The position numbers and the translations under genes are program-made. From contig OZ176053.1 of the NCBI GenBank assembly GCA_964247055.1, positions 434,001-498,000 on the forward strand: a stretch of 64,000 bases of DNA, read 5' to 3'. Below are positions 21,853-63,579 of the stretch, piece after piece. This DNA is from Paragordius varius. Taxonomy: Eukaryota; Animalia; Nematomorpha. The notes beneath the pieces were generated by a model. It saw nothing but the letters and a program-made list of their open reading frames with translations. It searched no databases and had not been told where the DNA came from. Every line of letters begins with the position of its first letter. Positions within the stretch are counted from its first letter, which is position 1.

Positions 21853-22697
21853 TTTATTAGAATATGTTATTTGAGAACAAATTTTATAAAATGAAATTAA
21901 TGATTATAGGAAAAAAACAGGGCTTCAAATCGGAATTGGAACCACATGGAACGGAACGCGAATCTTTAGATTTTAGCAGGAGTTGGTATCATTGGTTTGA
22001 AGCAACTTCCAAAATAAGTGTTTCGTTCCCATATTCTTAATTTTTAAAAATTTCCATATAATTTCTAAATTATTATACAAAGTTGATTGTATGATAACAT
22101 TTTTCTTCACGTTTTCCATGAAAATGGAATAATCATACCAAAAAATTTTATTTTAATACAATTCTAGAAATATATTAACAACTTCATTTCTATCCGATTC
22201 AAATCAATTCACCATGTTGACATTTTTTTCAGATTTTTAATCTTTAAAACTTTAAGACGACTGCAGAGCAGACATAAAAGTTAACTTTGTGTAAAATTTT
22301 ATAAACTATATGTAAGTGTCTCATAGCTTAGGAAATACGATATCCAGGATATGCCTTATTTTCCCTGCTATAAATTATAAATTATTCTCTTTAAATAATT
22401 TGACAACCTAAATTTTTTTCAATCTTAAAAATTATAACATCTATAATCAATTACCCATAACTAAAAAAATCAGCCACACTATATTTCAGTGGTAGTGCTT
22501 AAACCGTTGCACACCGGGTGTATGAAGCGGTTGATTTTTTTTGTCCACAGATTTTGAAAAAATATTAAAATTTTACCATGTAAGGGTACATTAGCGGGCT
22601 CCCAATACAATATATGTTTGATTTAGCAAAAATATATAAAACCAGGATCTGGCCATTTAGAATTTTATAATTAATTAAGATATTTATATATATTTAA

Positions 22698-23252
22698 CAT
22701 TTTGATTCAAATTGGGGTATCTAAATACCACAGACTTAATTTAAGTTTGGATTTTTAAAAAACTATTGAAGGAAACGGTTCCAATTTAAATTTATGTTTA
22801 TAACCTAAAAAAAATTATAAAATATGCCAAAATATCTAAATAAAATTTTGTTTTGAAAAAAAAGTTCCATGTCAAATTACTTCGACGCCATTTTTTTTCA
22901 CAAAATTTTTGCAAAATATCTTCTTCACTAATTTTAAGGGTAAATATTTAAATTATAATTAACAATGAGAGAAATAGAAAAAGCTATTTATTTTGTTTTA
23001 TTTTTCTATTTTACCATTTTACGCATGTCATGTTGACTAAATTTTTACCTTTCGGTTTTAGCTTAATATAAGTAATATCAAGTATTTTTGAATTATTTTT
23101 ATATATTTCGGTTTATTAATGTTATAAGTGCAAGATTTTGCCATGGTTACGATTCCTTCCATATTTTTAAAATTTGAATTTATACAGGCTTGGGGCATTT
23201 AATTACCCTAATTTGAATCGAAGGACTAAAATGAATGTGTTGTATCCAAGTG
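22698..23252 (+). mobile_element. piggyBac-like MITE, family D copy 1
   Basis: TTAA at 22694-22697 and 23253-23256; right end ATCCAAGTG; subterminal inverted repeat GATTCAAATTGGGGTA. Homologous along its length to copies 2 and 3. Confidence 0.8.
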
Positions 23253-24382
23253 TTAACAGCCAAGTATCCGGTAATACGTTGTAAGTGAGTGCAACTGCTC
23301 TTTACACATACTCTTCTCCAAACCTAAAACTAAGTGCTTAATAATTTATAAGCCACGAATCTGTTTTAACATTAGGAATTTGGCTTCCCCAAAGGGCATA
23401 ATAATTGTGAAATAATACACAGTGACAGCTTACAGTTCGATAACAAACTATCAACAGAAGTTGTTACGTACCATATTTTCTTTTAAATTATGTTTTAAAT
23501 CACAACTGATGGATTTTAGTCTCATATCATAATAAAAATGTTAATAGTATAATGAAAAGTCAGGGGCTAAAATGGAACGGGTTTTTTATGTAAGAAACTG
23601 GTCATGAACAGTTTTTTAGGAACCAATCCGGTTCCCTTTTTCTTTGATCAGGACCCAGGTTTCCATTCCAAATTTTAAGAAGTACCCCAGTTTTATTTTT
23701 AAAATTTTGGAGCCCAGACCGGTTCCGGTTTTAACCGTTGTGAAACCACTCTGTACCTTTTCACTGTTTGTAGCCATGGAAAAAATCTTGAATGAAATTT
23801 GTAATTGGAAATTGGATCAAAACAAACATTTTAAAATCAAGTACCTTTTTCATACACTACATTACTTTTTGGGGTAGTTTTCTATCTTAGAGCGATTTGT
23901 AATTTGTATACCCCAATATTTAAGCTATTAAGCTTAAAAAAATATGCTTTCTTTAGTCTTTTATACTTATTATGTAAAATTATTTTTTGAAAAAATATAA
24001 AATTTAAAACAATCCCAATCTAAAACATTTTTGGAGCCATTTTCTTTCTAATTTTTTTTTAAATTTTTTATGGAACAAGTAAATAATTATATATTATATA
24101 GAAAATATAAATAGTTAGCTTAATAAAGCTTTCAGGCTACATTTTCCGGCAAATGTTTGGATCGGTCCATTTTTAGACTCTCTGTGTTACAAAACTAATT
24201 ATAAGTTTTTTATATAATACAGGAGAACAATGTGTGTTAAATTTTATCTATAACTTTCCAAACTGCAGTTTATTTACAAAATTCAGCTCTGGTATATCCA
24301 AAAGTGAAAAAAAGCAGAGAGCAAAACCCACGCGCAATAAAAATGTAATTATATTTTACCTTTCGAAATTCGGTGATTTCAC

Positions 24383-27300
24383 ATGGATTTGTTCACACCT
24401 TACAAGAAAATAGGAGCATATTGTGATAAGAATCCGTTTGTTTTGAAGTTTAACGAAAAAACAAAAGATTATGAAATAATATGTAGCGTAGGAAATGTTT
24501 TCCATATTTACAAAGTATTTATATTTTTATTTGTTTATTGATGGTTATTATATGAATATATAATATGATTATTAGATAAATGGGTTGCGGTTAATAGCTG
24601 TTTCTAAACCCTTTGAGAGCCCAATAAACACGATTGCTGCGGATTACAAATTTATATATGTTGCTTGTGGATCTGATATACACATAATTAACATACATTT
24701 TGATTTCCATAAAACATTGTCTTTAATCGATAAAGATAAGCACATTGAAAACAAAACTTATATTATAAAACATTTATTACCTTTTGGAACAAAACATTTA
24801 ATATCTGTGGATTCAATTTCAACTGTTAGGGTATGGGAAATTGAAACGCAAACCCTTTATTTTGTCATTAACTTTGGTGTGGCCCAATTTGCGGTTAGTA
24901 ACTATTTGTTTATTTAATCATATTATTAAGGGAAAATTAAATGACATTTTTTCTTATAAAGGATTCATACTTTTTATAACGACCTTTATCATTGATATAC
25001 GGACAAAACACAAAAATATAAAGACAAATATTTTTTGTTAAAAGACAACCAAACTTAAATCTTCTTTTTTAATTATAACTCATTGTTTAAAATTGCAAAG
25101 CATGGAGTCACGGATATCGGTAACACAATTAATTTTATATTTTATAGTGGGAATTAAATATTTTATATAAAAATTATGCGTTTAAATAAAAAGTATTGTT
25201 GTCTTTAATAAAAAAAATTTGTCTATATATTTTTACGTTTTGTTCGTATAATTTCAATACTGTAATAGAATTTCCAAATTACACTTCTATATTTGGAAAC
25301 CCAAATATATGAAATAAATCTAATAAAAGTTATGGTTATCCTTAAAATAATATTTGTCTTTTAATTTTCACATTTTTTCTTTATAAACATAATAAGAGTT
25401 TACTTAAATTGCTTAAAAAAACTAAAAACATCAAAATTTTGTGCTACTGTTCTCTCTTAAAAAATGTATTTAATATTTTTTATAGACTTTTTAAAAATTA
25501 ACAAATTAATATTTCATTTGAATCAAATCAAATTTCTTTATTAGCCCGGTTTTTGGTTTTCCAAATACGGTTTTAACTTACAATCAAATGTTTTAATCTT
25601 TATTTAATGTACCGCAAAAAAGTTTATTTTATTACAGTATGCATTTTAATGGTTGCTTATTTCACACTATAATAGATTGCCAGACAGTAGTGTATGGAAA
25701 AAACAATATAATGTTGATTAAACAATTTGTTCTTTTCTTTTTTTCCATACCCTACTGTGTAGGGCGAATTGCCCCCTAATATAGTGTTGTGGAATAAGCA
25801 AGCAACCCTAAATGCATATTGTATATTTATATATTCAAACTCATTGAACATTTTTATAAAGTATATTTATGTAACCGCTAAATTTAATTTTTTCTAAACA
25901 TTTATTGATATCCAACATTCATAATGAAATTGATATTGATATAAGTACCTTTAGAAAGATAGATATTCTTGTTTATGCGGATGTTTTTTGATGCCAATAA
26001 AAAAAGTTTTGTCTGTTTAAACCAACCAACTATTAAAGGTAACTAAGACAACGATTTCTTTATTTCATGATTGCGCCATGGTTTTAAAGTGTGATTTTAT
26101 CCTTAAAAAAAGGAAGAAAGTGACTTTAAACTGTATATATGTATATATATATATATATATGTATATATATTTAATAATTACAGTAAAAATTAAATTATAC
26201 GGACAAAAGGTGAAAATATAAAGACAAATATTTTTTGTTTAAAAGGACAACATACTACTTTAATCTTGAAGTTTTTAAATATAACTCATAGTTTTAAACT
26301 ACAAAGTATAATATAGAGAAATGTAAATTGGTAACATACACAATCAATTGTGTATTTTACGATTGCAATTAAATGTTTTTTATAGTATAGGATAAATTAA
26401 GGGGTTTAAAAAAGTTTATGGTTGTGTCTTTTGAAAAAAAAATTTGTCTTTATATTTTAGCATCATTTTGTCCGTATAATTTAAATACTTACTGTATTTT
26501 CAGATAAATTGTTTAATCCATCCCCACACTTATCTGAACAAAATTTTGTTTGGCTCTCAACAAGGATCCCTCCAACTCTGGAATATTAAAAGTGGTCAAT
26601 GTATTTACACCTTTAAGGGTTGGGATAATTCCCCCGTTAATGTGTTACAACAGGTTTTTGTTTTTCGTTCTAACATTTAAAGATTGAAAAGATACATAAG
26701 TTTTTAAAAATCACTTTTTTAGCTTTTTTTATTTAAAAGATTAGATTAAATGCTATTTATGGCATTTAAGGACAGTTTTAGGCATTTTTAAGAGGCATTT
26801 TATATTTAAAGCAATATATATTTTATTATAGATAGCAAAATAACCACACTTTTTGATTGAAAAATAGTATTTTAATGGTTACTTATTTCAAAGCTATAGT
26901 AGAGCAATTTGTAATACAGTATTGTATAGAAAAAAAGGAACAAAAACTGTTGAATAAAATAAACATAAATTTGGTCAACTATTCTGTTAAATAATCATAT
27001 CCATTAATATACATACTCTAAAAGTAGAGCATATTTTCTTATAAAATAAAAATTTTTTTTGCTAAAAACAATTTTTTCAGTTGTGTAAAAAATAAAAATT
27101 TAATTATTATAGATTATAATTGCATTATAAACTGCTCGAATTTTTTAAAATTATCAATTTCATAAAATGTGGAAAAATAACTACTATTTCTATTTGTTGA
27201 TAATAAGATATAATTTGAATTTATTATATTTATAAGTTGATTTTAATTTTTATTATTTAACTCATTTTTTTACAAAGTTTTATGCTCAAAAAATTATTTT

Positions 27301-30300
27301 TATTGTTTCAGAGTACCGCAATAGATGTAATTGGAATTGGTTTAGAAAATGGTCGCATTATTTTACACAACATTAAATCGGATGTGACACTTTTTAGCTT
27401 TCATCAAGCCTGGGGTCCAGTCCATTTTTTGTCATTTAGATCTGGTCTAACTTTAATTTTATTTAATATATGAATTAATTTTAAAATTTCTTGTTATAAA
27501 AAACCATATTTGGCGCTTAAGATCATCCTTGATTTTGAATTTTTCTTTCAAAAAAATTTATTTATTGTAGGGTTTTATAGATTAGTAGGATAAAAATCTG
27601 GCTCTGTTAAAGGGAATAATATTTAACTTTTAACAAATTAACTTAGCTCTTAAATATTACCTATTTAATTCCGCAAATTGTGTATATGAAACTGTTATTA
27701 AAATGAAGGAAAAAATTATTAAGAAGTACAATCAAAAATCTGCCTTCATAAAATGGCTTAATCATGAGAATAATGGCATAGTTTTCCATGTATATAGTGA
27801 AATTTATAAGGATAAGGTGCCTAACATATTTAGTTAAAAGTAATTAAAGTTTTTTTTATAGAGAGTGAACTAACTCCAGTTTATAATACCACTTGGATGC
27901 TTTATGTCTTTTATTGAATCAAAACAATCATACATCGTTGCTAAATAGAGTGTTTTCTGAAAGAAATTAAAGAGTTGATGTTCTTATATTTACACACATA
28001 TTAAACATTTAATTGTTGAAAAAAATGGTTTAATTTGTATTTTAATCAAATTTTTTTCAACTTTCTACATTACACCCACGTCGAATCTGTATAATATTTA
28101 CAAAACCTAAAGACACCACAAAATATATATATAATTCAACTTTTTATATATATTTATATAATTTGATATATAAGTTTAATTTAAAATAAATTCTCCCTTA
28201 TATTTTGCATATAACAGATAATGTATGTCACTTGGTTAGTGCATCCAGAAACGATTTTGAATCCAAATGCGCCATCTGGGATTTGAAAGAACGCACGTTA
28301 GTTACCACATTTTCTCACAATCTCAATAATTTCAATAATAAATCCAAAACTATAACAGGCAAAAATATGCAAAAATATATGCAGAGATGCCATTTATATA
28401 ACATAAAAAATGTTGAGGAACATGTGTTTCAAACTTTGAATGGTGTAGCATATATACCTCATAAACCTTTACTTATTACTGGATCGGATTCGTTTACCTT
28501 TCATGGTTTAAAGTGTTGGCGTTTTGACGATAATCCCAACAATTTTGTTAGCTCTAATGTAAGTTTTTTTTTGTTTTTTACAATTTATAAATTGAAACTA
28601 TACTCTGGTCAAAACATAAAAATATAAAGACAAATATTTTTAAGAAACAATTCCATACTTTTACTAACTTGAATTTATCCTATAAAAATTGTTAAAATGC
28701 AATTGAATGTGTCGGTTTAGATATCTATAATATACTTTAGAACAATAAGTTGTATTTTATTAAATTTAGAATTTAAAGTATGGTGTCTTTTAGAAAAATA
28801 ACATATGTCTTTATATTTTTACCTTTTTTCCATATAATTTCAATATTTACTGTACATTATATACGATATATGTGTTGAACGTGAAATGCATCGATAAATC
28901 CATAATTTTTGTTTTAAAAGCAACCATATTTTATACATTAGATTGGCAAAAAAATTCATAGTATTATGGTGTTAAGTTATAACTTTATATATTATTCAGT
29001 AAATTTTACAAATCTAACATAAGTTTAGCTAAAAAAAGTCCATATTTCTTTCATATTTAGGATGCTATGGATATAATTTTTATTTATTTGTGATATATAC
29101 CATTTACAGTTCGAATTCACCCTTGAACAATTCGAATTCACCCTAAAAAACAATTATGTGTTTTTGAACCAATATAATTTATTATTAATATGAAATATAT
29201 CTTTATGGCATAGTTTTTTATTTTTTCAATATTATTTTAATTTAAAAAATTTTATTTTCTAAAAATATATTAAAATATAGGTGATTTTTAATTTAAAAAA
29301 AACACATAATTTATTTGAGGGTAAATTCGAATTGTTCTAGGGTGAATTTGAATTGTAAATGATATATAATGTATATTATAGAAGTAAAAAAAGGTGAGAA
29401 TAAAGATTAATTATTATAGATTCAAAAGTTTACAGCTGGTTAAACGAACGATCCGTATATTAGAGAATGCGTAATTTATTTTTGACTACGAAACCCAGAA
29501 TTTTTTTCTTAACCATGTTTAATAATTTAAACTTAAATTATATTCTATGACTTTTTTAATAGGCATTAATATCCAATGTAATTGTCTAAAAAACCAATAT
29601 TTTACACATTTTTTAAGGTTTTTTTCCTTACTTTTATATATTTGTTATAATTATATATATAATTTTCAACAACCCATTGTTTTCCAATGAAAAATTTGAC
29701 ATATAAGATATGGTAAAAATACCCTTTTACATATATTTTAGAATTCTTATGGATTAGGTTTACCTTTATTACTTTACGTTCGTGAAGGTCATAGTCAACC
29801 AATTAACCAGATTAAATTTTACAAACAAAAGTTAGATAATAATAATGCTACGTTAGAATGCGAAAATATGGAAAATAGTTTGATTATCAGTTCAGGTTTT
29901 TCCATATATATAATAAAAAGTTTTGAAATTTTTAGTTTTTGTTAAAATGATGTGTAAAAGTTAGTAAAATTGAATAAAAGTAAATATATATATATATATA
30001 TATATATAAATTATATGGACAAAATGTTAAAATAAAGGGAATTTTTCTGAAAAATTACTATTATTTTTTTATAACCCTAAATTTTTTATATAAATAATTA
30101 TTTAATTACAATCGTAAAATATATAATTGATTGTGTTATCACATTTTTAATTCATACTTTGCTATTTAAAACAATGAGTTTTATTCAAAAAAATTCAAGT
30201 TTAAAAAAGTATGGTTGTCTATTGAACAAGATAATTGTCTTTATATTTTTAATATTTACTGTATGTTTAATTTATACAGAAAAAAATTTAAAAAAAAGTT

Positions 30301-30865
30301 TAATAAAATTGAATGCATATATATATATATATATAAATAATATTTATATACCATTTAAAATTCAAATTCACCCTTAAACAAATTTACCCCAATTTAAATT
30401 CACCTTCGAATAATTTAAATTCACTCTCAAATAAATTATATGTTTTTTAAGACTAAAAATTACCTATATTTTTATATATTTTTAAAAAATAAAATTTTGT
30501 TTTAAATTAAAATATAATGCTGAAATAATAATAAACTATGGCATAAATATATATTTCATATTAATATTGAGTTATAAATTAGTTCGAAAACACACATAAT
30601 TTATTTTTAGGGTGAATTTGAATTGTTCGAGGGTGAATTTGAATTGTTCAAGGGTGAATTTGAATTGTTCAAGGGTGAATTTGAATCGTAAATAGTATAT
30701 ATATATATAAATATATATGGCATAAAAATATATTTTATATTAATATTGAGTTATATTAGTTTGAAAACACATAATTTATTTTTAGGGTTAATTTGAATTG
30801 TTCGAGGGTGAATTTGAATTGTTCGAGGGTGAATTTGAATTGTTCAAGGGTGAATTTGAATCGTA

Positions 30866-30902
<37 letters not shown>

Positions 30903-33900
30903 TATTAATATCGAGTTATATCAGTTCGAAAACACACATAATTTATTTTTAGGGTGAATTTTAACAACTGTAAATGGTATATATTTTTTTGCAATTTTAA
31001 AAGGTTATGATAATACACTTCGTATATTTTCTTGGGAGAATGCTGGAGTCTGCAAAAAATTTAAATTACCTGACCATATTGCACAACATGCCCTTGAATA
31101 TATGCGCCACCTATCTTCCCTGCTTTGTAAAAAACGTTTAAATGGGAAATCACTTAAAAATAATAAAAATAAAAATTATTATACGGAAAATAGTTTGGAT
31201 ATCGATTATAATTATTTCAAGCTTTTCCCTCATACGTTTGCCTTTGATTTTGGTGAGTTTTTATTTTTTATTTTCTAATTTATATGTTTAAGCCGGTTTT
31301 GAATGAAATTAATGATGTACTTGTTTAATTTAGCTTTGAAAAAATTATAAATAAATCATAATTCATTCTATATATTTAAATTAATATATAGTATTATCGT
31401 TTTTAAAAATTTCCCCCAAATATTTCAAATAATTTCAAGTTGTTCCCAAACATTTTTGCTTTTTAATGAGTTTTTTTTATATTTAAAATGTAATTATTAA
31501 AAGTTTATGTCAATTTATTCCCAAACATTCTTGCTTTTTAATGAGTTTTTTTTGTTTTTAACTGTTATACTCAAAGTGTATATTTTAATTGTGACTTTCT
31601 ATTTCAAAATTTTTTTTCAAATTAAATATTATGTGATTATAAATAGCTACCAATAAACGTACAAGATGGGATGATATTATAACGTTACACAATACTCTGA
31701 GGGGCCCTCTCACCTGGTCTTCATTGCGTTTAACTTCGATCCTTAATGAGAAATGCAATAATCGAGCAAACTCATCCGCTAAAAACTCTGAAGAAAACTT
31801 AAAACATTTACACTTTAAATGTACGGATAGAGTTATAAATGATTAAAATTATAAAGAATGTACGTAGGTAAAAATTAAAAGACAAATACTTTTTATGCTT
31901 TCCAAAAAAGAGGGCCATACTTGCATAAAAACTATCATTTTTGATTAATATAACTTGAATGCTTAAGATTTTGAAAAAAGGTGATTGGTTATTAATTTAC
32001 CCTATTTCTATTCTCATAAATACCCAAATCGATAGATTCAAATCCAAAAAAAAGGTTAAGGTTAAAAAGTACTGTCTCCTTTCGATACCAAAAAAAAGAT
32101 TTTTGTTTTTTAGTTTTTTTTACCCCAATATCTATTTTTTGTGTTAGATACTGACAATGAACTTGATAATTATATACCGCCTAATAGGGGTAATGTTTTA
32201 CCCCTGGTTCCAAGTATTATTAATCAAGAAAAAAATAAAACTCAAATCGTTCAAAAGAATGGTCAAAATATTGAATTTGATCCTCCTAACTATGGTGAAA
32301 TTTGCACAGTTTGTGCACTAAGTCCTTGTGGAAATTTTGCGTTCATTGGTTATGTTAATGGTAAGGTTTTATTAAATAGTTTTCAATAATTTTTACTAGT
32401 ATTTTTGGTAAAAACACATGGAATTCTTTAAGGAATCGATCGATTATCTTACAGTTATGAATACCGGATCAAAAAACGGATTTTTTTTACGTCAAACTAT
32501 TGTCTTCCATTAATGTGAAGTTGTATTAATGGTGAGCGGATATGGAAATTTTTTTCCATCAAAGCGTTTTTAAGGTGTCTTTTAGTGGTTTTGCTGTGCA
32601 AGACGAAGCATTCACGATTTGTAACAAAATTGTTTTTGCCAAGTTTTAATAGCTCATTTTCCGGTTTTTTGTCGATTTATATAAAGTAGTTTTTAGTTGG
32701 TAATTGTTAGCGATTATGTTATATATATCTATAATGTCACACGGGAATCGAAAAGTAAGTTTATAATTACAGATTACCGCTCTGGTCTCTTATAAAACAC
32801 AACATAGGGCATAGTTTTTTTTTGCAGAAGCGATTTAGCCTTATTGAAACGGCTTGGTAAGGTAATTGCCACGATTTTTCCGCTTTGGATTTACAAAATA
32901 AAGAAGACATTACTCATCACCTCTGTTCCATTTTCATAAATATAATTTCTTTTCGTGTGACATTGAGATAGGACACAAGTTATACTTTGTTTTCGAGTTG
33001 TTCTTGCAAATTATGTGGAATTCTTATGCCAAGTTTGTTGGACTTTTTCCCTATTACTCGTAGACATATACCATTTACAGGTCAAATTCACCCTTGAACA
33101 ATTTAAATTCACCCTTAAACAATCCAAATTCACTCTAAAAATAAATTATGTGTTTTCGAACTAATATAACTCATTATTAATGAGTTATATATCTTTATGG
33201 CATAGTTTATTATTTTTCCAGTATCATATTAATTTAAAACAAAATTTTTATTTTTTGAAAATATACAAAAATATTGGGTAATTTTTAATCTAAAAACATA
33301 TATTTTATTTGAGGGTGAATTTGAATTGTTTAAGGGTAAATTTGAATTGTTCAAGGGTGAATTTGAATTGTTCAGGGGGTAAATTTGAATTGTTCAGGGG
33401 TAAATTTGAATTGTTCAAGGGTGAATTTGAATTGTTTAAGGGTGAAATTGAATTATTCAAGGGTGAATTTGAATTGTTTAAGTGTGAAATTGAACTGTAA
33501 ATGGTATATTATTATTGAATGCAAACGGTAAGTTTTTTAACAGCCTTTTTTTCTGCTATGGGCATGTGTGCCCTAAATTTTCTTTTTCAGTCACACTAAA
33601 TTTGACATAACTACTAAATTATAGAAGTATAGCTTTTTTTTGGTAAACACATAACTTGTCTGTGTTTGTAGTTTAATATGTCAAATAATAGATGAATAAA
33701 ATGCAGTGCGATATTAAATTAATCATACTTTTGTTTTATAGTTAAACCGGTTATATATGAATACCTGTACTTTTTAAAATAAAAATGTTAAAAAAATTGG
33801 CCACACAAATATTAGTTTAGGTCTTTGCTCTTTTTAATTCATTTGATTTTGTTTTTAGTTTTGCGAAAAATTGCATTTTTTATTCAAACAAAGATGATTT

Positions 33901-41660: not shown

Positions 41661-41667
41661 AACTTCT

Positions 41668-41669
<2 letters not shown>

Positions 41670-41708
<39 letters not shown>

Positions 41709-41718
41709 TATATATATA
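41670..41718. repeat. (TA)n microsatellite; others at about 363, 1279, 26135, 29986, 30869, 34876, 45613, 58572 and 61585
   Basis: Read directly from the sequence. Confidence 0.95.
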
Positions 41719-41745
41719 TTTATTATTTCATCAGATATTTTTTAA

Positions 41746-42282
41746 CACCTTTATTCAAATTGGGGTAAATATCCCACATATTTTAAAAAACTACTGGAAT
41801 AAACGGTTTCAAATTAAAATTATGCTTCTATCCTAATAAAAATTATATATATAAGCCAAATATCTAAATATAATTTAGATTAAAAAAAACCGTATCAAAC
41901 TACTCGGACGCCATTTTATTTTACAAAATTTTTGCAAAATATTGTGTTTAATTGATTCTAAGGCTAAAATTAAGTTTATTTTTTATTTAAACCACATTTA
42001 ACATTAATTTAAACATAAAAAGTGGTAAATTTTGGATTATTTTTATATTTGACTTATGCACACATGTCAATATGGCCATTTAGAATAGGGTTTTACCTCT
42101 GAATAAGATATACCAAGTAATCTTAAATGAATTTTTTATTATTTGGTTGATTAATGTTATATAAGTGCAAACCTTTGCCAGGGTTTCAATTTATTTAATA
42201 TTTTTTGAAATATAATATTTTTAACAAGCCTGGGATATCTAACTACCCCAATTTGAATCGAAAAATGAATGTGTTGTAAGTG
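41746..42282 (+). mobile_element. piggyBac-like MITE, family D copy 2
   Basis: TTAA at 41742-41745; the right flank is TTGA. Same internal sequence as copies 1 and 3. Confidence 0.75.
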
Positions 42283-42354
42283 TTGAACCCTCGATTTTGG
42301 ATAAGGCTTTATAAGAATTTTGTTTTATGGTTAAATGTATGTAATGAAATAAAT

Positions 42355-45300
42355 ATGAAACACACTCAAATCAAATTTCAAGCAGATTTGGGTCGTTTTG
42401 ATCGGGACACAGATTCTTTGCTTATTTGCTGTCAACCTAATGAACTATCCAAAATTGATTTTAATAATAAAATCAAAGAATTTATATCTGATAACATTAA
42501 TTTTCAAGTATGTTTTTTGCCAAAATAATATATAGATTATCAAAGACATCTATTGCACTGCCATAGATACTTATCAGGATAGACATATTTTTTTGACTGG
42601 AGATAGTTATTACCCATATTTACTTGACAGAGAAAGTGGTTTATACATTTTACCTCCTCATTCATCTCGCCACAATGCCCCAAATCGTCCTATATCGTTA
42701 ACAAAATTTTTAACAAGCAAAAATTTTCGCCTCAAATATAAAACCTGTCTTGAAATTAAGGATGAAAATAATGCACCGGTTCCACCCGAAAATGTCATTA
42801 CTCCGATGGGAGTAGTCACCATATCCAAAGACACTTCAAACGTACCCAAAATGGTAATTTTTTAAATTTGAATAAAATTGTATTTGACCCTTTTAACTTT
42901 GGTTTAGGCCAGGTAACTTTGAATTATTTATTTAATAAAATATGTAATTATTTTGTTTTCTATTCATCATTAAATTATAATACATTTACACTTAAAATCA
43001 GTTTGTCGACTTTTAGCTTTCTATCATTTGGGAGTTTCTCCTCTAAAGTTATACGTAATAAAATTTTTTAATATGTAGTTTATACATTAAGCCACAATTC
43101 CATAGTAAAATTATTGATTGAATTATTTAAATATATAATGTTAGTTAGCCATATTTATAAATTTTAATATTCGATTATTAATTTATGACAATATTAACAG
43201 CATATATTTTCAAGTTTGCTTTCCACATTTAATTTTTTGCAATTTGTTTTTTAACAAAGTTCATATTTTAAGTTTTCAAACTACTTTCCAAACTACTTGC
43301 TAGAAAATTATCTTTATAAATATAAATTTTGCTAAAATAATAATTTAATTTTTATCGTTTTTTTTATCGTTCATTATTACAGACAAATCTTGCATTATCA
43401 CGCCTACATTTGCTTATAGCTTGTCCCAGGTCACATATGATATCATATGGGGTAGCTATAGCCAGAGCTTATCCAGCCTACTGCGTTAAAACATCCGAAT
43501 GTGAAATGCCTTACATTAATCTTTCTACCGTGGAAGTAGACGGCGTTACCATGGCAACGACAACTCATGAACGCCGAGTTAGTGCCATTGACCTTAAAAA
43601 ACCGTTTCAAGGTAGTGGTTATTTTACAGTTAGAGGTTTTATTTCCATTTTTTTTTATTTTGAGATTTTAGAGAACTTTTGTTTATAAAATGTTTTAAAG
43701 AACTATTGTTTTCCTTGTTTCCTTACATCAAATACAAGTCATATTTTCAAACTCTTGAAATTTTCTTTTCTCCGATGTTTTAACTTAAATAATTACATGT
43801 TGACAACTTACGAAAGCCGAAAAAGCGCCATAGCCTTTTAAAAAAACTGTTTCAAGGTTACCTAGCTGGCTTAGTTTTTCAGTTTTACAATTTAAGATCC
43901 TTATTTTCTTTTTTTGATTGTGAGATAGATTTTAGATTTTTTAATCATTTCTAAGGGGTCCCATTCCTCCGAGTTTTTTAATTATTTCTTTATTGTGTAT
44001 TGGCACGTATTTTTTTCCAACTTTGGAAAAGTTCTATCCTCTCCATATGTTTAAACCTTAAATATTAGAAACTCTATTGATAATAACGACATAACTCTCA
44101 AGAAATGTTTTTAGGGACTGGCTTTTTTGGATAAAAGTCTATTTTAATTTTTAAAAGTTTAAGATTTTTTGGAAAACTTTGGTTATATTTAATCTATTAT
44201 ATTATAAATATTTGACATTTTTGGTTAAATTATAGTTTTAATTCTGATAGAATTATTTGTATATTCTTAATATACTGATTTACAAAAGATTGGAACAAAA
44301 AGATTTTCTCTTTAATGAGACCCTAATTGTTTTAGTTTTTAAAATTTATCATTATATTGTAAGTATATTCAATATGGTTAGTTTTTATCCGACTTTAAGT
44401 TTATTGGATATTTTAATCATTTTGAATTCATATATATATATATTTATATATATATATATATATATCTGTTTGATGTAACTATTGTTTTTGGAAATTAAAT
44501 TTTTGATATTATAGTTTTTTAAACCCATTTGCAATAGATATAAATGATAATAAAATTATTAATAAATTTTATTTAGTTTTTTTTTAAAAAAAATTCATTC
44601 TTTCCATATATTTTTAGATAAAGAAACTACGAATGATAAAAATAAGGCATCCGATGATTTTGCCCGTCAAATTATCGTACATTATCAATTTACTGATGAC
44701 AATGAGGTAATATATTGTTAATTAAAAAATCTTACTAAAAAATTAAATTTTTTATAAGTTTTTTGTAAAAATAATAATTAGTTTGATACATAAAAACTTA
44801 AAAACGTTATAAATATTGTGTTTTTTTCATATTTACACATTAAAAATTTCATTATCAACTTAAAATCTTTATAAATTGTTATGTATGACAAAATGTAAAA
44901 ATTTTTTGACACCCTAAAAAATACTTTAATATCTATCTTTTTATGCTAAATTATTATTATTTTTTCCTTCATTATTTGATTACAGGATTCACCAAGTTTC
45001 TTAACGAAAGATGAATGTTACTTGTTGGAACATTTAAGTTATGGCGTCCGTTTAGCTGCAATTTTGGTTGATATGCCTTGCAATATACTTAGTACTAATG
45101 AATTTATTCAAGTTTTTTTTTTACATTTATTATTTCTACTAAGATTTAGAATATTAAAGTTTTTTTTAATAAATAACATAAAAATTAAAAAAATATTGCA
45201 AGAAATATAAAAATTTTTGGACTTTGAATAGGTTATCTTGAGATAGAACATATAAAAATTACTTTGCGATCCAAAATGACGCGAAGGTTTAATACCATTT

Positions 45301-45610: not shown

Positions 45611-45644
<34 letters not shown>

Positions 45645-53146: not shown

Positions 53147-53169
53147 ATAAAACAGACTACCTCTTTATA

Positions 53170-53461
53170 ATTTGTTAAAATTGAAGATATACGGACAAAA
53201 TGTGAAAATATAAAGACAAATATGTTTCAAAAGACAACCATGCCTGTTCAATCTCGATTTTTTTTCGAATTTATATTTTTTCTTAAAATTGCTAAATATG
53301 AAATAGATATGTATATATTGGTAACACAAATCAATTTTATATTTGATGGTATGTATATATAATTTATAAAAGAAAATTTAGATATTAAAAAGTATGGTTA
53401 GAAAAAAATATTTGTCTTTATATTTTTACGTTTTATCCGTTTAATTTTAGTTTTTATACTG
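53170..53461. mobile_element. Family B MITE
   Basis: TATACGGACAAAA ... TTTTATCCG ... ACTG-TA. Confidence 0.75.
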
Positions 53462-53662
53462 TAATATGCATGATTAGTAAATTATAATAGTAGGTGTAGG
53501 ACACAATACTCTTTAACTTAGTTTTCCTATTACTCTATGCACAATAATATTTTTTTCTAGAAAATTATTATATGTATTGCATATATTCATTAGTAAATTA
53601 ATTTATATGAAACATATATACTAATAAATTTTAATTAATTTATTTTTTTTATATATCATATA

Positions 53663-53920
53663 CCATTTACAACAAAAATTTACTTTCGAACAACTCAAAT
53701 TCACCCTAAAATAAATTATGTGTTTTTAATATTAAAAATGACCTATATTTTTTTATATTTTCAAAAAATGATATATTGATTAAAATTAAAATAATATTGA
53801 AAAAACAATAAACTATGTTATGAAGATATATTTCATATTAGTGCGGAGTTTTATTAGCCAGAAAACACATAATTTATTTAGGGTGAATTTTGTTCAAGGG
53901 AGAATTTGGATTGTAAGTGG
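53663..53920. mobile_element. Family A foldback MITE
   Basis: TA-CCATTTAC ... GTAAGTGG-TA. Confidence 0.75.
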
Positions 53921-54564
53921 TATAGTAAGATTAAATTAGATATAGAATATTTGACATTTTTTTTGAAAATAACTATGATATTTTGCACCTAGTTTGTAAT
54001 TGCCAATGAATATTCTTTAGTGATTCATAATAATAATAATATGAAAAATGCGTCTTGTTATAACCGATAAAATATTTGCATTTAAAGACATTACAGGTAA
54101 TGTTAAATATTTTTAATTAATATTATATTTTGTGGTGCTATAAAGACATTGTCTTTTAAACATATAAAAAAATTTATTTTTATTTTTCAGATGTAGGACA
54201 ATAATCCGAGCGAAAACGTTAAATGAGTGCAATACTTAACATTAAATATTTAAAGAAAGCCTAATTTTTCATTTTTTTTTCAAAAAAAAATATTTTTAAT
54301 TATATTTTTTTCATTTATTTATATGTATACCAGATTTTTAATGTGTTAAGTTTTAAAAAAATAAAATCGGCATTACACACAATTTTTTTTTGAAAAATCT
54401 TGTAAGACATATTTTTACCTTAGTTTAAATTAGAGACCAGATATCCATCCTTATTTTTTGAAAATTTTATTATTTTTTATTGCAAAACCTAGTTGTGTAA
54501 TGTTTAACATTTGAACACAACACATTATATATCTTTTACTAATTGAGTATAAATCATAAATTCT

Positions 54565-57500
54565 ATGCAAGGGGAAAGCCTTGATAAAAATTATTTAACG
54601 AGAAAAATGCAAACAGAAACCAAAATGAAATTACAATCATCCTCAAAATCAAAACCCAATTGGAGTAATTCTTTAGTTGGGATTTTCGGCATTTTTTCCG
54701 TTTTTTTCATTGGGGCTTTTGGTCTTTGGCTTACGGGTCAATATTTCACCATGTTATCGGGTTCAGAAGTGAGTGTTATGCGAAATTTCAATAAAACAGC
54801 TATCATAAGCTTTGAAAAAGGATTACGCTCCATCATTCCAAACGAAAAAATTCATCAAATCCCTCCATTAGTTTCAGTTAATTTAGAACCGGTTCCTCTT
54901 ACGAGTTCATTCAATTTTAACCAAAATCACCAATCCGTCAAAGATGATCCATCTTCCATAAGCACAGGTGAACTGCAAAGGAGACAAGAACCTAAAACGC
55001 TTAGTTATTCTTTATTCCCATCTATTTTACGACAAATGGTTGGTTGGTTTATTAGCTTACGTTAAAATATATATACTACTCAATATTTTTTATAAATTAA
55101 TCTAAAATAAAAATTTTTGTCTCAAAGATTACAGCTTTTAGTCGACGGAAAAAACGTAGCGTTGACCAAGATATAGATGAGGACGAAAATGTAAACCTAG
55201 AAAATTTGACAGAGGAAGAAAAACTGGAGAGGGAACGGAGAACCTATGTAGCTGGACATTACGAAAAAAGTTTTATTTAAAAAAATGAAATTATACGGAT
55301 AAAACCTAAAAAGGGACAAATATTTTTATCTAAAAGACAACCACCCTACTTTTTAAACCTCCTTAATATTTCCTATATATAAATTATTTAATTACAATTA
55401 AAATATATATATAATTGATTTTTATACCAATTTACATATCAATTTCGTATTTTGCAGTTTAAAACAATGAGTTATATTAAAATAAAGATTTAAACTACAG
55501 TATGGTTATCTTTTGGAAAAAATATTTGTGTTTTTTTTGTCTGTATTCAGTTTTTACTTAACATTTTCTCAAAAATACTTAAAAGGTTTAGAATTAAGTT
55601 ATAAATTACTTTTAATATAAAATGTTGGAGAGAGATTTGAATTTTGGTATGGGTCTTAAATTTAGATTTATGGATATATAAAAGTGTATATGCATACCAA
55701 ACTTTATTTTTGCTAGAGAAAATTAGGATCTAAGGTTTGGAAAATTTTAATAAAGTTTCGCGTTTTGCAAAATATTAATAAAATGTTCATTTTTTTAATT
55801 TTCGAAATATAGGACTTTTACTTTTTTTAAAACTGCCAGTATGACCTTTTTTGGAAGGTAAATTTTCCTTTTTAGACAAAACATATTTTCCAGAATGTAA
55901 TTTTTGGCACCGAATGCCTGGCGTATAATAATAACATAATCTTTAAAAAAGCTTGACGAAAAATTGACCTAAAAACCTAATATATAAATATATATATGTA
56001 TACATTTATAAACATTATGAAATATTTTTGCTAATATAGCACATACATACCTACCTATCCACCTCTTTTAAGTAATTCAACAGGATAATAAATATTATAT
56101 ATACTAAATTAAATATTAAAATGACATTTTGTTATGCATGAATCACGATATCTGTAATGGTAATATTTTACATCAAAAATTTAATCCTAAATATCAAAGA
56201 TGTTAACTATAGCTGCCTTTTATAATCTGTGGCGCGTACCGTAAAACGGCTAATAAATTTTTATTGATTGATTCTTAAACATTTTTTGCATCTCCCATCA
56301 TCAATAATTTATATGATAAAAGAGAAAACAAAAAGATTAAATTGAAATTAGGAAAAATTTCACCAAATTAATGCATAGACAGAATGCTAAAAATATTTAA
56401 AACTATAACTCGTTTTTTTTCGTAAGGAGTAAACTAATTTTCTTAATAAACATATAATGATCTCACAATTTTCCCCATTTTAATTAATACATACGCTGCT
56501 CTTTTATTTAGAGTGCAGACCATGTTTGGATGGTATAGTGGGGCGGGCTGGTGCCCCAGGTATGCCTGGCTCTCCCGGGGAAAATGGGCGCCCTGGGCGA
56601 GATGGACCCCCTGGGCCAGATGGAAATGCTGGTAGAGATGGAATTCCTGGTCGATATGGGACTCAGGTAACATGCTTAATTTAACATAATTTTCCCAAGT
56701 CTTTTTCCAGGAACTCATGTAAAGTCTTAGAAAATGCGTGTTTAATATATACGATACAATGTGTTTACGCCTATAGTTAATGAATAAAATTGTCGATTTT
56801 TCTTGGATGCCTTTTTAATATAATACCAAATTGAATTTATTTTCTTGGACACATGGACATAATATTCTCTAAACCTTGTTATGAGTATTAAATTGATCGA
56901 TTTCGAACCAAATAAATAAAAACATGTGCAAGCATTTCTATGGAGTATAGTTTTTTATCATTAATAACAACACAAATGTATTTTTACTCGTAGGGACCCC
57001 GTGGACCTCCTGGATTAGATGGAATTCCTGGTTCCCCCGGCAAGGATGGAGAACCAGGGCCTCCTGGAAAAGATGGCTTACCAGGCCGTGATGGAACATC
57101 TGGAAAGCCTGGGATCTTAGTAATAATAATTTACATTTTATATTTTTCTAAAAAACAAAAGATTGTCCAGTAGAGGTTGGATTATATAATTTGAAAATAT
57201 ATATAACTACTTATCGGGATAGAATTTCACTTGAAGTGTATGAAATTTTTTTAAAAGGGCCCGAAAGGTCAACCTGGACGAGATGGATTCCCTGGACGCG
57301 GTGGTCTTGATGGAATTCCCGGGAGAGATGGAAAGCCTGGAGAGCCGGGGCGAGATGGGCTTCCTGGTTTACCTGGGGAGCAAGTATATATATACATCAT
57401 ATTATCATAACATTTTTTAACCTTTTTTTTCCAATATTCTTATGCATTCAATGGTGTGTATGTGTGTGTAGGGATACCCGGGACCTCCAGGGGAAGATGG

Positions 57501-58571
57501 CTTGCCAGGAAGTATTGGCCTTCCAGGAAAAGATGCAAAACCTGGTATTCCTGGAGAACCTGGGCTTGATGGCGGACCCGGTTTTGATGGCCCACCGGTA
57601 AATATCTATCAATTCATATATTTTTGACACAAATTCAAAGAAATCCTACTTTCCGAAACATACATTATAAAAAATGTCAATGTATATGAGTGCTTTGACA
57701 CGCTCAAAATTAAAATGCAATTATCCAAATATTTTTTTCTCCGTAAATATAGGGTCCACCAGGACGTGATGGTAGACCTGGGTTGGATGGCGCTCCAGGG
57801 CGACCAGGGAAAGATGGGAATCCGGGCAGAGACGGGAACCCTGGAAAAAGCGGAGTTCCTGGAATCAAAGGAAATCCTGTAAGTGTTTCTATTTTAGCTA
57901 AAAGTAAAAGGTGATTTATATAATTTTTAATTAGGGCCCCAAAGGATCCCCTGGTAAAGATGGTAAGCCCGGAAATAACGGACATGACGGTTTACCTGGC
58001 AAAGATGGGGAACCCGGAAAGCCTGGTAGTGATGGTCTACCTGGAAGTCCTGGAGAAAAAGTTTTTTCCTAACATCCTAATTATTTCTCTCTTATTTTAA
58101 GTTTCTTCCCCAAAATATTACTTCAATCATATTTTGATAAAAGTGAAATAAAACACATTCAATCAAAACTTTTTTGATTCACTTTTATCTTTTTACAGGG
58201 TCCCTTGGGACCAAGCGGTAAACCCGGTAAAGATGGGCACCCTGGTAGTGATGGGAAAGATGGGATTCCTGGAAAAGATGGAAACCCTGGAAAGGACGGA
58301 ATTCCAGGCTTACCTGGACCACCTGTATCCTCTAATAATATATTAAATTTCTTTTACCCTTAATTTTTATTCCATATATGCTTGTATTTATATTCGTTAT
58401 GATTAAATTTTCATTAACATAGGGTAAGGATGGCAAACCTGGTAAAGATGGGCATCCTGGCAAACACGGAGAAAAAGGCAACCCAGGAAGCCCAGGGAAA
58501 GATGGATTACCAGGGAGAGATGGCGAACCAGGAAAACCTGGTCCAAGGGTAACTGCTTATTTATTATACAA

Positions 58572-58607
<36 letters not shown>

Positions 58608-59746
58608 TATTACAATTGTTAATGACACATACGAGAAAAAATATTTAAAAAATATAGGGACCCCCAGGGGACAGGGGTGAACCCGGTCGAGACGGGAGTG
58701 AAGGTCTACAAGGACCGCCCGGTGAAAGAGGAGCCCCCGGTGGCACTGGTTCCATCGGGCCGCCAGGACCGCCTGGTATTGATGGACATCCTGGGAAAAA
58801 CGGAACGCCAGGCCCGATTGGTGAAAAAGGACCACCTGGCCCGACCGGTAGACCAGGTCAAGCCGGAAAACCCGGAGCTACTGGACCCCGAGGTGACGCT
58901 GGAAACGATGGGAAACCTGGGCCTCCAGGCACCGACGGTATTCCAGGCAAGGATGGATCGAATGGAATAGATGGTGAAGCCGGCATCTGTCACAACTGTG
59001 TCCGTGTCGGTCCTACTGGTATGATATTAAGTTCAATTGATCTATCTTAAAACTATTATATTGGTAAAAATTAGGGTATAAAAGGTATATTTTATAAGCT
59101 ATCTGCATTATTTTATAGTGGAAAAGGAATATCACTCATGTTATGTCCATTTCGGTAAATCCTCATGCCAAAATCCACAAGGAGATGTTGAAACCATATA
59201 TGACGGTATGATATATATTTGTAATTTTCAATCTCTTTCATTCTCATGGTTATACCGTTTATAGGTTATATCTCGGGAGGCCATTATTTTTTCTCTGGAT
59301 CAGGGTTTGATTACCAATGTTTGCCTCGAAATCCAGATTTCAAGTTCAAATTAGACGGTTTTCAATCCAAAGCCACCATATACGGGGCTGAGTATAGGGT
59401 ATATGATGAACATTCACCTTTTACTCGCCGCGGTCACAAATTTAACGTGGGTCTATGTGCCTTGTGCTGTGTCCCCAGACCTGTAAGTATCATGTTTCCT
59501 GGGTTCAAAGAATGTCCTTTGGAATCTGGACAAAATTGGCAATTATCATATCGGGGCTACATTATGTCCGCTAATGAGGAACTTTCTCGCTCCAATTATG
59601 TGTGCATTGATGAAAATGCTGATTTTGAATCAAGTGGTACACCAGGGGACGGATCTGCACTTTACATTGTAGAAATTAAGAATGCCCATCTGCCAGATAA
59701 TTATATTTCGGGCCGCGAAATACCATGCGTAGTTTGTTCGCAATAA
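54565..59746 (+). CDS. Type II transmembrane collagen (860 aa): TM, furin site, CRPC, 150 Gly-X-Y triplets, CHNC, then a spongin/short-chain collagen C4-like C-terminal domain
   Basis: Exons 54565-55038, 55128-55269, 56512-56666, 56994-57119, 57258-57383, 57472-57597, 57753-57878, 57935-58060, 58199-58324, 58423-58548, 58658-59018, 59119-59205, 59265-59746. [22 protein letters not shown]; RRKKR|S; C-terminal motifs [54 protein letters not shown]. Confidence 0.9.
55283..55560. mobile_element. Family B MITE (degenerate) in collagen intron 2
   Basis: GAAATTATACGGATAAAA and AAAAGACAAC motifs; degenerate right end. Confidence 0.65.
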
Positions 59747-60584
59747 TCATTATTTTTTGAGTATTTGTTTGCATTGTTTGATAATATTAATATAGGCATG
59801 TTATGACTCAATTGTACTCCCCTTATTATCATATTTTATAATTTTATACACAATCATCACCGTTAAATAAATATTTTTCTTCTTTTGTCTATCTCTATTC
59901 TATCGTATGTTAGGGTATATATAGTACTTAAGCAAGTTTGCGTAAACTAGCCATATCAACAATTTAAAAAGACCGTGCAAAAATTTGACAAATTATTTTT
60001 TACTACCATGTACATTTTTTAAGGACATAAGCTAATTCAGTCATTTATCACATTTTTAAAATTTTTATTTATGACAAACTATATTAAATGAAAAAATTAA
60101 AATATAAGTATAATTAGGTAATTAGGTCATGGTCATTTATACAATATTGTTGGTAACGAAGGTGCAAATAGACCATTAAATTTTATGCAATATATAGGGG
60201 AATACAAATAATTGAGCTTAAAATTTTAGAGAGGTTTGTATAAATCAGACGGAACATTCTTCGTCAGTGTAGTTGTTAAATTTAAATTTTAATCTTTATC
60301 AATGATTATAGATATTTATCACCTATGAAATTATTTAGATAAAATATATAAATCCTAGAAAAATAATTTAGAATTCTCATGGTGATTATAGCTTTGGGCC
60401 TCACGAGTAATATAAAGATAAGATTAACCCTTTGTGTGAATCGCAACATGTAGAAAAAGCGTATTTGCGCACATAATGAGTAAATTTTTTTGGTGGTGAA
60501 AACTAATGCTTCAATATCATTAATAATTATACACAGTATCCACAAAAAAATATCCTAAAATTAAAAGAATAGTTTGTCAAAATT

Positions 60585-61535
60585 ATCATGGTATACTTTT
60601 GGTTTTGACTTTTTCGAGTGATTTAAGAAAGTTATTAATTTTTCCATAAAATGGCAAAATCTTTATTCAATAAATATCACTAAATTAAACTACAACAAAG
60701 GCATAATATTTTAAATTTTAATGGATGGGGACTCCAAAGGTATGAAATTTTTGTACTCTTTCAAAATGAGCTAGTTCTCTCAAAATAAGCGCAAAAATGC
60801 CGGGATTTAGCGATATAAATTTTTATTATATGCTAAAATTTGATATCAACTAAAAACATATACCTCACTTCATAATAATTTGAGGCATGATGGAGACTGA
60901 TAGAAAAGCTTTAAGATGTTATAATTATGCTTTTTCTCTATATGCTGAACGTTTTTATCGTCAATTCTTATCTAAGGGTTCGTTTTTTAAATCAGTGTTT
61001 AATATGTGTTTTTTGCAAATATTCACCAAGAAATGAAACGATCCTTTAAATTTAAATTGTGAAGCATAAAAATGTTCAGCATCATCTAAATATTAAAGCG
61101 TTTTTATGCAGTTACTATCATGCCTAATAGCATAAAACAAACTTTAACAAAATTTACTTAAAATTAAATTTTTGAAAAAAAACAATGCATTTTATAAAAA
61201 ATATTTTTAGTTGATATCAAGATTAAGCAATTAAATATTTTTTGCGCAATCTCGGGTGTTTATTCTAAAATAAGTAGCTATTTAAAAAAAATGGGACTTT
61301 CACAGTCCATATCTAAACATTATTTTAAAATATTGGTTTGCTTTTTATAGATAGTTTATAATATATTTTAGTAATATTTTTTGGATTGCAGCATTTATTC
61401 ACCAAAAAAATTAATCTAAAAAATAAATTATGCATTTTTCAGATATAGAGCACTTATTATAAAAGTGTATAAAACCTTTTGATATCACTCGTAAGAGCCA
61501 AAACAAAAAGCCGCATAATAATGATATATTTTTTA
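60585..61535. mobile_element. Long-TIR foldback element, family G copy 2
   Basis: Inverted arms, for example ttgatatcaacta (about 60840) and tagttgatatcaa (about 61208), and ttttggttttg...cgagtg versus cactcg...ccaaaacaaaa. Confidence 0.55.
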
Positions 61536-61581
61536 ATTAGAATATATATTCCAACAGCTTATATTTATGTGGATGTGTATT

Positions 61582-61625
<44 letters not shown>

Positions 61626-61668
61626 AATTACTATAATTCTATTTGAAGCCCACAAAAGTGCAAATTAA

Positions 61669-62244
61669 CACTTCGATTCAAATTGGGGTATCTAAATACC
61701 CCAGACTAAATTTAAATTATTTTTAAAAAACTACTGAAAGAAACGGTCCCAATTTAAATTTATGCTTCTATCCTGATTATTATATAAATATGCCAAAACA
61801 TCTTGATAAAATTTTGTTGTGAAAAAAAAGCTCCATCTCAAACTACTACGACGCCATTTTTATTTTACAAAATTTTGGCAAAATATCGTCTTTATTTAAT
61901 TTTAAGGGTAAAACTAAAGCTAATTTTTTATATAAATCACATCTAACATTGATAGAAATGGAAAAAGCGGTTTAGTTTGTATAATTTTTTAATTTTACAA
62001 ATTGACACATGTCATGTTGACGAAATTTTTACCTTTCGGTTTTAGCTTAAAATAAATAATATCAAGTATTTTTGAATAAACTTTTTTATATATTTCGGTT
62101 TATTAATGTTAGATAAGTGCAAAATTTTGCCATGGTTTCGATTCCTTCTATATTTTTTTAAAAATTTAATTTTAAATAGGCCTGGGGTATCCAACTACCC
62201 CAATTTGAATCGAAGGACTAAAATGAGTGTGTTGTATCCAAGTG
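61669..62244 (+). mobile_element. piggyBac-like MITE, family D copy 3 (best preserved)
   Basis: TTAA-CACTTCGAT ... ATCCAAGTG-TTAA, with an asymmetric subterminal repeat TTCGATTCAAATTGGGGTA / TACCCCAATTTGAATCGAA. Confidence 0.85.
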
Positions 62245-62620
62245 TTAATTTTTATATAACTCATAAGGCCATAAACAAAACTACCCATTCTGTTGCATAT
62301 ATGGACATTTTTTTCCACCATTTTTATTGTAAAATTCACTTATTAACTTTCATCGCAAAAATCAAACAAATATATAAAAGGTTTTTAAACTAATAGATTT
62401 ATCTATCAGATACATACTTCATCATGTTTTATTTTATAATGCCAGATTTTGTGTACTGTGAAAGCAAAAAAAATGCTAAATTATTGCACACTCATCTTTA
62501 TTTTATTATAAAATATACGAGTTTTTATATAATAAATTTTGGCCAATTTAATCTTATAATCATACCTTTTTCATAAATATATTTTTAAACCTGATCAACA
62601 CATGCTTTAGGTTTTTTATA

Positions 62621-63579
62621 ATGGGTATCACTGATCTGCGGTTTAATCAGCTTCAGGATTGCTTTATAATCTCTTCGAATGATGGGATTAAAGTCTTTAA
62701 TTTGGAGCCTTTGCATGAATTACTAAACTTAACTGTGGACCAAGTGGGAAGTGTATCTTTTGCAGAAATGATTTTTAGGTTTCAAAAAATTCTTTTTAAT
62801 AACGTTTTAGAACAAATTTAACGGCATTTGTAAGCGGGGATCCTAAACCAAAGTACGCTGAAAATATTGTTGCCGTATGGGATGATGTTAGAAAAATGGT
62901 TATATTTGAATTCCATTTAAATTTACCCGTTTTTCAAATACGATCCACTCATTCACGCCTCCTTATTCAATGCCAAAATCAAGTTAGTATATCAAAATTT
63001 TTATGAGTCATTCTGTTGTTTTTAAAACTGCTTTAAAGCAAATAGTTCCGGTTCTGTACCTTAGCTAAAATGGTTTGGATTCCAGTTCATTTTTCCAATT
63101 AATAAAACAATATTATTTAGCAATGTGAACCAATTATATTTGGAAGCTAGTCAATTTTATTAGATGAGAATAATTATAAAATTAAAATCTATAAAAGTAT
63201 AAGATTCTTATTAAAAATAATGTATTTTATGACTTTGCGATTCCGAATCGGTTCCAAAATAACTCTTCAAGTTTGTTATCTTAATTGCAAAAACATTTTC
63301 TCTTTAGATTCACATATATCAATTCGATATAAATCCACCTGTTCATTTACAAACTATCGATACATGTGATAATTTTCGAGGGCTGTTAGCTCTTTATTGC
63401 CCAATTAAAGAATCATACTTTTGTGATTTATCATCTAACCATCACCCGAAAGATGAAAAAACTCCTAAAGGTAACCAACATGGTCAAAATAACAATCAAC
63501 TCCATTTAATAGCATTCCCTGGCATAAAGTGTGGTACCGTTCAAATTGTCGATATTGATTCCCAGCCGTCTGAAAAAAA
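62621..63579 (+). CDS. WDR45: WD repeat domain phosphoinositide-interacting protein 4 (WIPI4, PROPPIN); 5' part only
   Basis: Exons 62621-62778, 62811-62982 and 63308 to about 63579 (last donor uncertain). GITDLRFNQLQDCF, DQVGSVSFAEMIFR, VWDD and FPGIKCGTVQIVD look more like WIPI4 than WIPI3. The gene continues beyond the window. Confidence 0.85.

Follow-up and report, generated by a model that had tools for sequence, protein, structure and literature searches.

How do three copies of one small mobile element come to stand in front of three genes, all pointing the same way? The question is raised by a stretch of 64,000 nucleotides of the nematomorph Paragordius varius (contig OZ176053.1, positions 434,001 to 498,000; hereafter the window, C4:434001-498000 of the 110.6-Mb animal assembly GCA_964247055.1, which comprises 44 contigs). 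Here three copies of a TTAA-flanked element, called family D, precede the start codons of genes for WDR36/Utp21, an M17 aminopeptidase and WIPI4/WDR45. The initial annotation of this DNA saw in them either strong targeting of transcription start sites (TSSs) or the co-option of a portable promoter or 5' untranslated region (UTR) module. The analysis described here identifies family D as a non-coding, high-copy, non-autonomous miniature inverted-repeat transposable element (MITE) derived from piggyBac, and reveals a real bias of its copies towards the start side of coding sequence. The explanation we consider probable is that family D inserts preferentially at gene 5' ends, irrespective of orientation, the shared orientation of the copies in the window being coincidental.

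Family D in the window

A BLAST search confined to the window, with the youngest copy, D3 (region 61665-62248), as query, returned exactly three full-length copies, all on the plus strand: D3 itself, D1 (region 22694-23256; 83.6% identity, E 1e-178) and D2 (region 41742-42278; 75% identity, E 8e-105). The remaining matches were AT-rich fragments of at most 33 bp. In this very AT-rich sequence (GC 20-40%), the pattern TTAA+CACTTSGAT was observed three times, against 0.24 expected. The count of three same-strand copies in the initial annotation was thus confirmed, both by BLAST and by the exact boundaries given below. These were read from the sequence and from an alignment of the copies; identities are to a consensus of 59 copies sampled elsewhere in the genome.

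22694-22697, no strand: TTAA target-site duplication left of D1
22698-23252, plus strand: D1, piggyBac-derived MITE, 555 bp, 89.7% identity to the consensus
23253-23256, no strand: TTAA target-site duplication right of D1
41742-41745, no strand: TTAA target-site duplication left of D2
41746-42282, plus strand: D2, the oldest copy, 83.3% identity to the consensus
61665-61668, no strand: TTAA target-site duplication left of D3
61669-62244, plus strand: D3, the youngest copy, 576 bp, 97.4% identity to the consensus
62245-62248, no strand: TTAA target-site duplication right of D3

D2 has small deletions in its right end, where the adjoining duplication (42283-42286) now reads TTGA through decay. 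D3 is 94-96% identical to other genomic copies. Judging from their identities to the consensus (90%, 83% and 97%), D1, D2 and D3 are separate insertions of different ages. The (AT)n tracts directly to the left of D2 and D3 are not a family-wide trait, being present on each side in 2 of the 59 sampled copies, compared with 4% of random sites.

Structure and origin of family D

Family D is abundant throughout the genome. A 29-mer from its right end, searched genome-wide with up to two mismatches, was found 984 times in forward and 981 times in reverse orientation (1,965 in all), and not once when the sequence was reversed as a control; a first genome-wide BLAST search listed 3,591 candidates. 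The family therefore numbers about 2,000 or more copies and makes up 1% of the genome or more; per 64 kb, about one to two copies would be expected. The element is approximately 580 bp long, and the sole listed open reading frame (ORF) of at least 90 amino acids (aa) that touches D1-D3 extends from D3 into the flank. TTAA is present on both sides of 49 of the 59 sampled copies, and on each side taken singly in 52. The tips read CACTTCGAT in 49 copies and ATCCAAGTG in 48. Where family-D copies are nested in one another, TTAA stands at both sides of the insert and intact copies have a single internal TTAA at that position, which amounts to empty-site proof that TTAA is duplicated on insertion. 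Two otherwise normal copies (C1 near 5,282,368 and 5,388,737) are flanked on both sides by ATAT instead of TTAA and may represent integration at a non-canonical target.

The ends combine an outer inverted repeat of 13 nt with an inner inverted repeat of 60 nt that starts at different distances from the two tips, 2 nt on the left and 29 nt on the right, as the asymmetric subterminal repeat proposed in the initial annotation had implied. Within the inner repeat lies a palindrome, which in D3 occupies the following positions:

61684-61703, no strand: 20-nt palindrome (left subterminal repeat) at 15 nt from the tip, bringing the complete left end to 35 nt
62183-62202, no strand: matching palindrome (right subterminal repeat) at 42 nt from the tip, bringing the complete right end to 62 nt

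This geometry can be written LE35/RE62, for the left end (LE) and right end (RE). In the Trichoplusia ni piggyBac element the minimal ends are LE35 and RE63, and the 19-bp palindromes they carry are identical in sequence but asymmetric in position (PMC11707139). Family D thus resembles T. ni piggyBac (IFP2) in its TTAA target and duplication and in a palindrome of about 19-20 nt at unequal distances from the two tips (~15 nt and ~42-44 nt). Unlike T. ni piggyBac, family D consists of thousands of non-coding copies of 580 bp, and its tips read CACTT... rather than CCCTAG....

A transposase-bearing relative shares its left end with the family. Profile searches of the genome with PF13843 (DDE_Tnp_1_7) found three transposase loci only. 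One of them (L062, C2:8855291-8858887) contains an exact family-D left end and shared sequence, followed by the N-terminus of a PF13843 transposase with a tiny intron and, further on, by decayed PF13843 segments (E 3e-18 for the match). From the left end on, the first 174 bp align with family D at 79% in BLAST, and the likeness to MITE copies reaches ~236 bp. The only solved-structure match for the short transposase fragment of this locus was the T. ni piggyBac transposase, to residues 298-371 of which it aligns (PDB 6x67), including the DNYFTS motif; the related transposase thus shares a catalytic motif of this type with T. ni piggyBac. The second locus (L063, C2:8848432-8852028) is a 99% identical inverted duplicate of the first, about 6 kb away. 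After the N-terminal exon of this transposase-bearing relative comes a GT..AG micro-intron of 20 nt, and the relative extends past the DNA examined. The third transposase (C1:9364014-9365074) is better preserved, with open frames of 204 and 214 aa, and is only ~33% identical to the L062 transposase over the short stretch compared. No family-D ends were found within 1.5 kb of it, and it may belong to another family or be a domesticated gene.

The initial annotation had also likened the tip to the piggyBat type. The published left end of piggyBat from Myotis lucifugus reads CACTTGGATT (Table 1, PMC13405395), and its first 9-10 nt are identical to the outer tip of family D on the right and differ by one base from the tip on the left. 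Together with TTAA, the tips and the transposase-bearing relative, this upholds the assignment to piggyBac. The tip itself, CACTTGGAT, identical over 9 nt at the right end, is insufficient alone for subgroup membership and is weak evidence for a closer tie to piggyBat. Both elements use TTAA, but piggyBat has no clear asymmetrically placed palindromes at both ends (PMC11707139), unlike family D, which shares these with T. ni piggyBac.

A bias of family-D copies towards the start side of coding sequence

The placement of family D was studied in 59 copies outside the window (L002-L060), with flanks of 1-1.5 kb. These comprise 29 young copies, chosen only by similarity to D3, and 30 unselected copies from contig C1, for which a perfect right-end motif was the sole criterion. 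Coding segments were called by a codon log-odds model trained on ~10 kb of hand-picked exons of the window. When checked in the gene regions of the window, the model mostly found the correct strand and, at a score of at least 10, made only three wrong-strand calls (in a repeat tract and a collagen gene). After masking of all family-D sequence, the coding segment closest to each copy was recorded on either side, as 'away' if the element lay on its 5' side and as 'toward' if it lay on its 3' side; 915 non-coding TTAA sites of the window served as control. A self-trained codon model was dropped after drifting to GC-rich, collagen-like sequence, as was CAGCTG as an exon proxy, which is too rare (six in the window).

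The ratio of 'away' to 'toward' segments was 22:6 within 300 bp, 33:14 within 600 bp and 43:22 within 950 bp, and 19:5, 30:13 and 42:17, respectively, after dropping segments that overlap other repeats (P values for the latter, 0.0015 to 0.014). At the control sites the corresponding ratios were 0.96, 0.97 and 0.99. The 5' side is thus about 2.4-3.7-fold commoner than the 3' side. The asymmetry was seen at every distance and score cut-off tried, with p of ~0.05 or below in 15 of 16 cases, and in both subsets at 300 bp (10:2 in the young and 12:4 in the unselected copies). The start-side bias is therefore real. It sustains the TSS targeting proposed in the initial annotation in a weaker form, an excess of 5' over 3' placements against a control of about 1:1.

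Homology searches of individual loci identified seven copies that lie 21-609 bp upstream of start codons, verified or judged probable, with the right end facing the gene, and one verified copy that faces its gene with the left end:

L009, ATG +21 from right end: GALT-like (PF01087, profile positions 8-68)
L007, ATG +28 from right end: BTB protein (PF02214, profile positions 1-32)
L028, ATG +78 from right end: proteasome subunit PSMC4 (residues 1-116 align to 1-112)
L019, ATG +114 from right end: alpha-actinin (N-terminus match)
L032, ATG +317 from right end: SMC, named SMC2 (PF02463, profile positions 1-103)
L024, ATG +565 from right end: VAP-like (by eye only)
L013, ATG +609 from right end: DENN protein (uDENN domain)
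L047, ATG 179 bp from left tip: TMEM245-like first exon in a 213-aa ORF, anti-oriented (homology-verified)

Residues ~25-176 of the L047 frame align to ~4-146 of proteins of 820-910 aa, and both homologues that were scanned have a C-terminal AI-2E transporter domain. This frame and that of L045 had no match in a protein atlas, the former being resolved by a full HMMER search, and ten left-side ORFs matched no Pfam family. The 'coding' neighbours in L014 and L036 are retrotransposon ORFs. Copies within introns occur in both orientations (L008 and L049; L023, where the exons on either side are urocanase-like by eye; and L054, which adjoins an internal PH_RBD exon). Beside the right ends of L024 and L060, which are unrelated loci, stands the same ORF-like sequence (QEKGVADP...), which therefore represents another repeat family. 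The right flank of L032 contains a stretch resembling the palindrome-rich DNA of ACCGGTTCC type found at 23560-23830 of the window.

Site choice, selection, chance or a promoter module

Among the sampled copies that lie upstream of coding segments, co-oriented and anti-oriented cases numbered 12:10 (300 bp), 16:17 (600 bp) and 22:21 (950 bp). Family D is without overall orientation bias, and the claim that copies are always co-oriented with the gene, together with the oriented module built on it, found no support in these counts, in the anti-oriented TMEM245-like case or in the intronic copies, which point both ways. The agreement of all three copies in the window is most likely a coincidence with a chance of 1 in 8. 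A specific role for the right end is nevertheless worth considering, as it could supply a core promoter or a compatible 5'UTR and act as a portable promoter module, gene-facing copies being tolerated or favoured. Right ends would then be tolerated at 21-114 bp from the ATGs of essential genes (GALT-like, BTB, PSMC4, alpha-actinin, NPEPL1-like) and left ends not. We regard this as rather improbable, although several details are consistent with it. Right ends come within 21, 28, 78 and 114 bp of homology-verified ATGs in 4 of the 59 copies, and within 72 bp for D2 in the window, compared with 179 bp for the closest verified left end and 100 bp for one unverified left-end case; homology-verified first exons number five or more on the right side of sampled copies and one on the left. 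A gap of only 21-28 bp means that the core promoter region has to reach into the element at its right end. Furthermore, all four sampled cases have an upstream ATG, 22 nt within the right end, that is not in frame with the ATG of the gene, and this would place the transcription start downstream of that upstream ATG; at the 21-28-bp loci, transcription probably starts at or just past the end of the element. Against a promoter module stand the even orientation counts and the verified anti-oriented copy, and the difference in distance between right and left ends is not significant (Mann-Whitney p 0.25; within 130 bp, 5 versus 1, p 0.22). The right end of the old copy D2 has suffered deletions and displays no extra conservation, and experimental piggyBac insertions at transcription starts are orientation-neutral (PMC4786924). 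If the module existed, an AT-rich and very compact animal genome would have in family D a natural donor of promoters that depends on orientation.

That the copies are simply spread at random, the pattern in the window having no genome-wide counterpart, is very unlikely. The statistics of the window are weak enough to allow it: co-orientation of three out of three has a chance of 1/8 and, with ~36% of the window intergenic by rough gene spans, an intergenic position of all three a chance of ~0.05, so that the window by itself gives no proof of a non-random arrangement. It is the independent sample, asymmetric at all cut-offs tried, and the symmetry of the random TTAA control that speak against pure chance. 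Selection without targeting is a more serious, if still unlikely, candidate. Insertion into TTAA would be blind to genes, and the purging of copies behind exons (in introns) and in 3'UTRs would leave an apparent excess on the start side. Several observations weigh against a preference at the insertion step and are to be set beside this possibility. Compared with random TTAA sites, 'toward' sides within 300 bp are depleted 3.5-fold (5% versus 18%) and 'away' sides are not enriched (18.6% versus 16.9%, with one gene-dense window as baseline); depletion without enrichment makes selection behind exons a live alternative to targeting. In the young set the bias fades past 300 bp (15:9 at 600 bp and only 20:15 at 950 bp), whereas in the older, unselected set it persists (23:7 at 950 bp). 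The sample comprises only 59 copies with flanks of 1-1.5 kb; gene positions come from a codon model trained on this window rather than from annotation; most left-side 'away' segments are without homology confirmation; and the comparison with the transposase-bearing relative L062 covers the left end only, its right end lying beyond the DNA examined. Selection, in turn, has to contend with the youngest copies, which at 97-98% identity to their consensus are already placed 10:2 within 300 bp. Insertions 21-114 bp before the ATG of an essential gene should also harm at least as much as insertions into 3'UTRs or introns, and experimental piggyBac has the same start-site preference before organism-level selection (PMC4786924).

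Preferential insertion at gene 5' ends in either orientation, which we judge the probable explanation, would involve the following steps. Family D is a recently active deletion derivative of piggyBac that would be moved by a piggyBac transposase supplied in trans, excised at TTAA and pasted into another TTAA with duplication of those four bases. Integration would most likely favour DNA poor in nucleosomes at gene 5' ends, whichever way the element points, and copies would frequently re-insert into or beside existing family-D copies. D1-D3 would then be three independent insertions into 5' regions. The bias would arise from the choice of insertion site rather than from later selection, and the neighbouring genes could remain functional since the end of the element, or the DNA just past it, can serve as the start of transcription. 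Clustering of the copies fits local hopping and self-targeting of the TTAA sites of the element itself. Further family-D sequence of at least 100 bp was present within the 1-1.5-kb flanks of 31 of the 59 loci, against ~8% by chance (a rough figure derived from copy number). In some arrays, four to five copies stand head to tail and share TTAA (for example L019, C3:7357832-7360779), and nesting has occurred repeatedly at the same internal TTAA, at about position 234.

Relation to other elements found near genes

Family D resembles several MITEs that accumulate near genes. The rice element mPing and the TTAA-specific Wukong, Wujin and Wuneng of Aedes aegypti are likewise small, non-autonomous and of high copy number, and lie preferentially near the 5' flanks of genes; mPing belongs to the PIF/Harbinger superfamily and thus differs from family D. 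What is known of the preference of piggyBac for start sites comes mostly from insertions engineered in insects and in cultured vertebrate cells. Experimental piggyBac insertions fall right on transcription starts, in DNA free of nucleosomes, sense and antisense alike (PMC4786924). Family D likewise has a start-side bias without orientation preference, but the piggyBac profile was obtained from fresh experimental integrations, whereas the preference of family D is deduced from fixed natural copies. A natural family of thousands of copies that bears the piggyBac signature, a start-side bias with neutral orientation, suggests that start-site preference is an old property of the piggyBac superfamily. 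Natural insertions tens of bases from essential ATGs also allow one to ask how compact promoters tolerate or use insertions. In genome annotation, a family-D copy can usefully flag a gene start close by but is uninformative about the direction of the gene.

Genes and other features of the window

Homology searches for all genes were run on single exons rather than on spliced protein models. The first coding exons downstream of D1, D2 and D3 are as follows:

24383-24538, plus strand: WDR36/Utp21, ATG at 24383, 1130 bp past D1 (identity from the following exons)
42355-42510, plus strand: M17 aminopeptidase (NPEPL1-like), ATG at 42355, 72 bp past D2 (later exons PF18295 and PF00883)
62621-62760, plus strand: WIPI4/WDR45, ATG at 62621, 376 bp past D3 (structure alignment)

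Exon 2 of WDR36/Utp21 (24576-24914) matches PF25171 from profile position 16 onwards; the first exon, which is too short, and one further exon of this gene had no solved-structure match. Residues 2-55 of WIPI4/WDR45 align with residues 8-61 of human WIPI4 (PDB 8kbx). The gene names in the initial annotation (WDR36, NPEPL1, WDR45) accordingly agree with the Pfam and PDB matches, and its distances of 1130, 72 and 376 bp with the element boundaries and start codons. From 24 kb to 64 kb the window has five genes, every one on the plus strand, which fits the view of the common orientation of D1-D3 as coincidence.

The DNA between D1 and the WDR36 start is rich, at 23560-23830, in short palindromes of the type ACCGGTTCC and may contain another small repeat. 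Elsewhere in the window, positions 2871-3614 (plus strand) hold an open frame of 248 codons with a strong coding score, within a gene on the minus strand; it looks like a transposon fragment in an intron.

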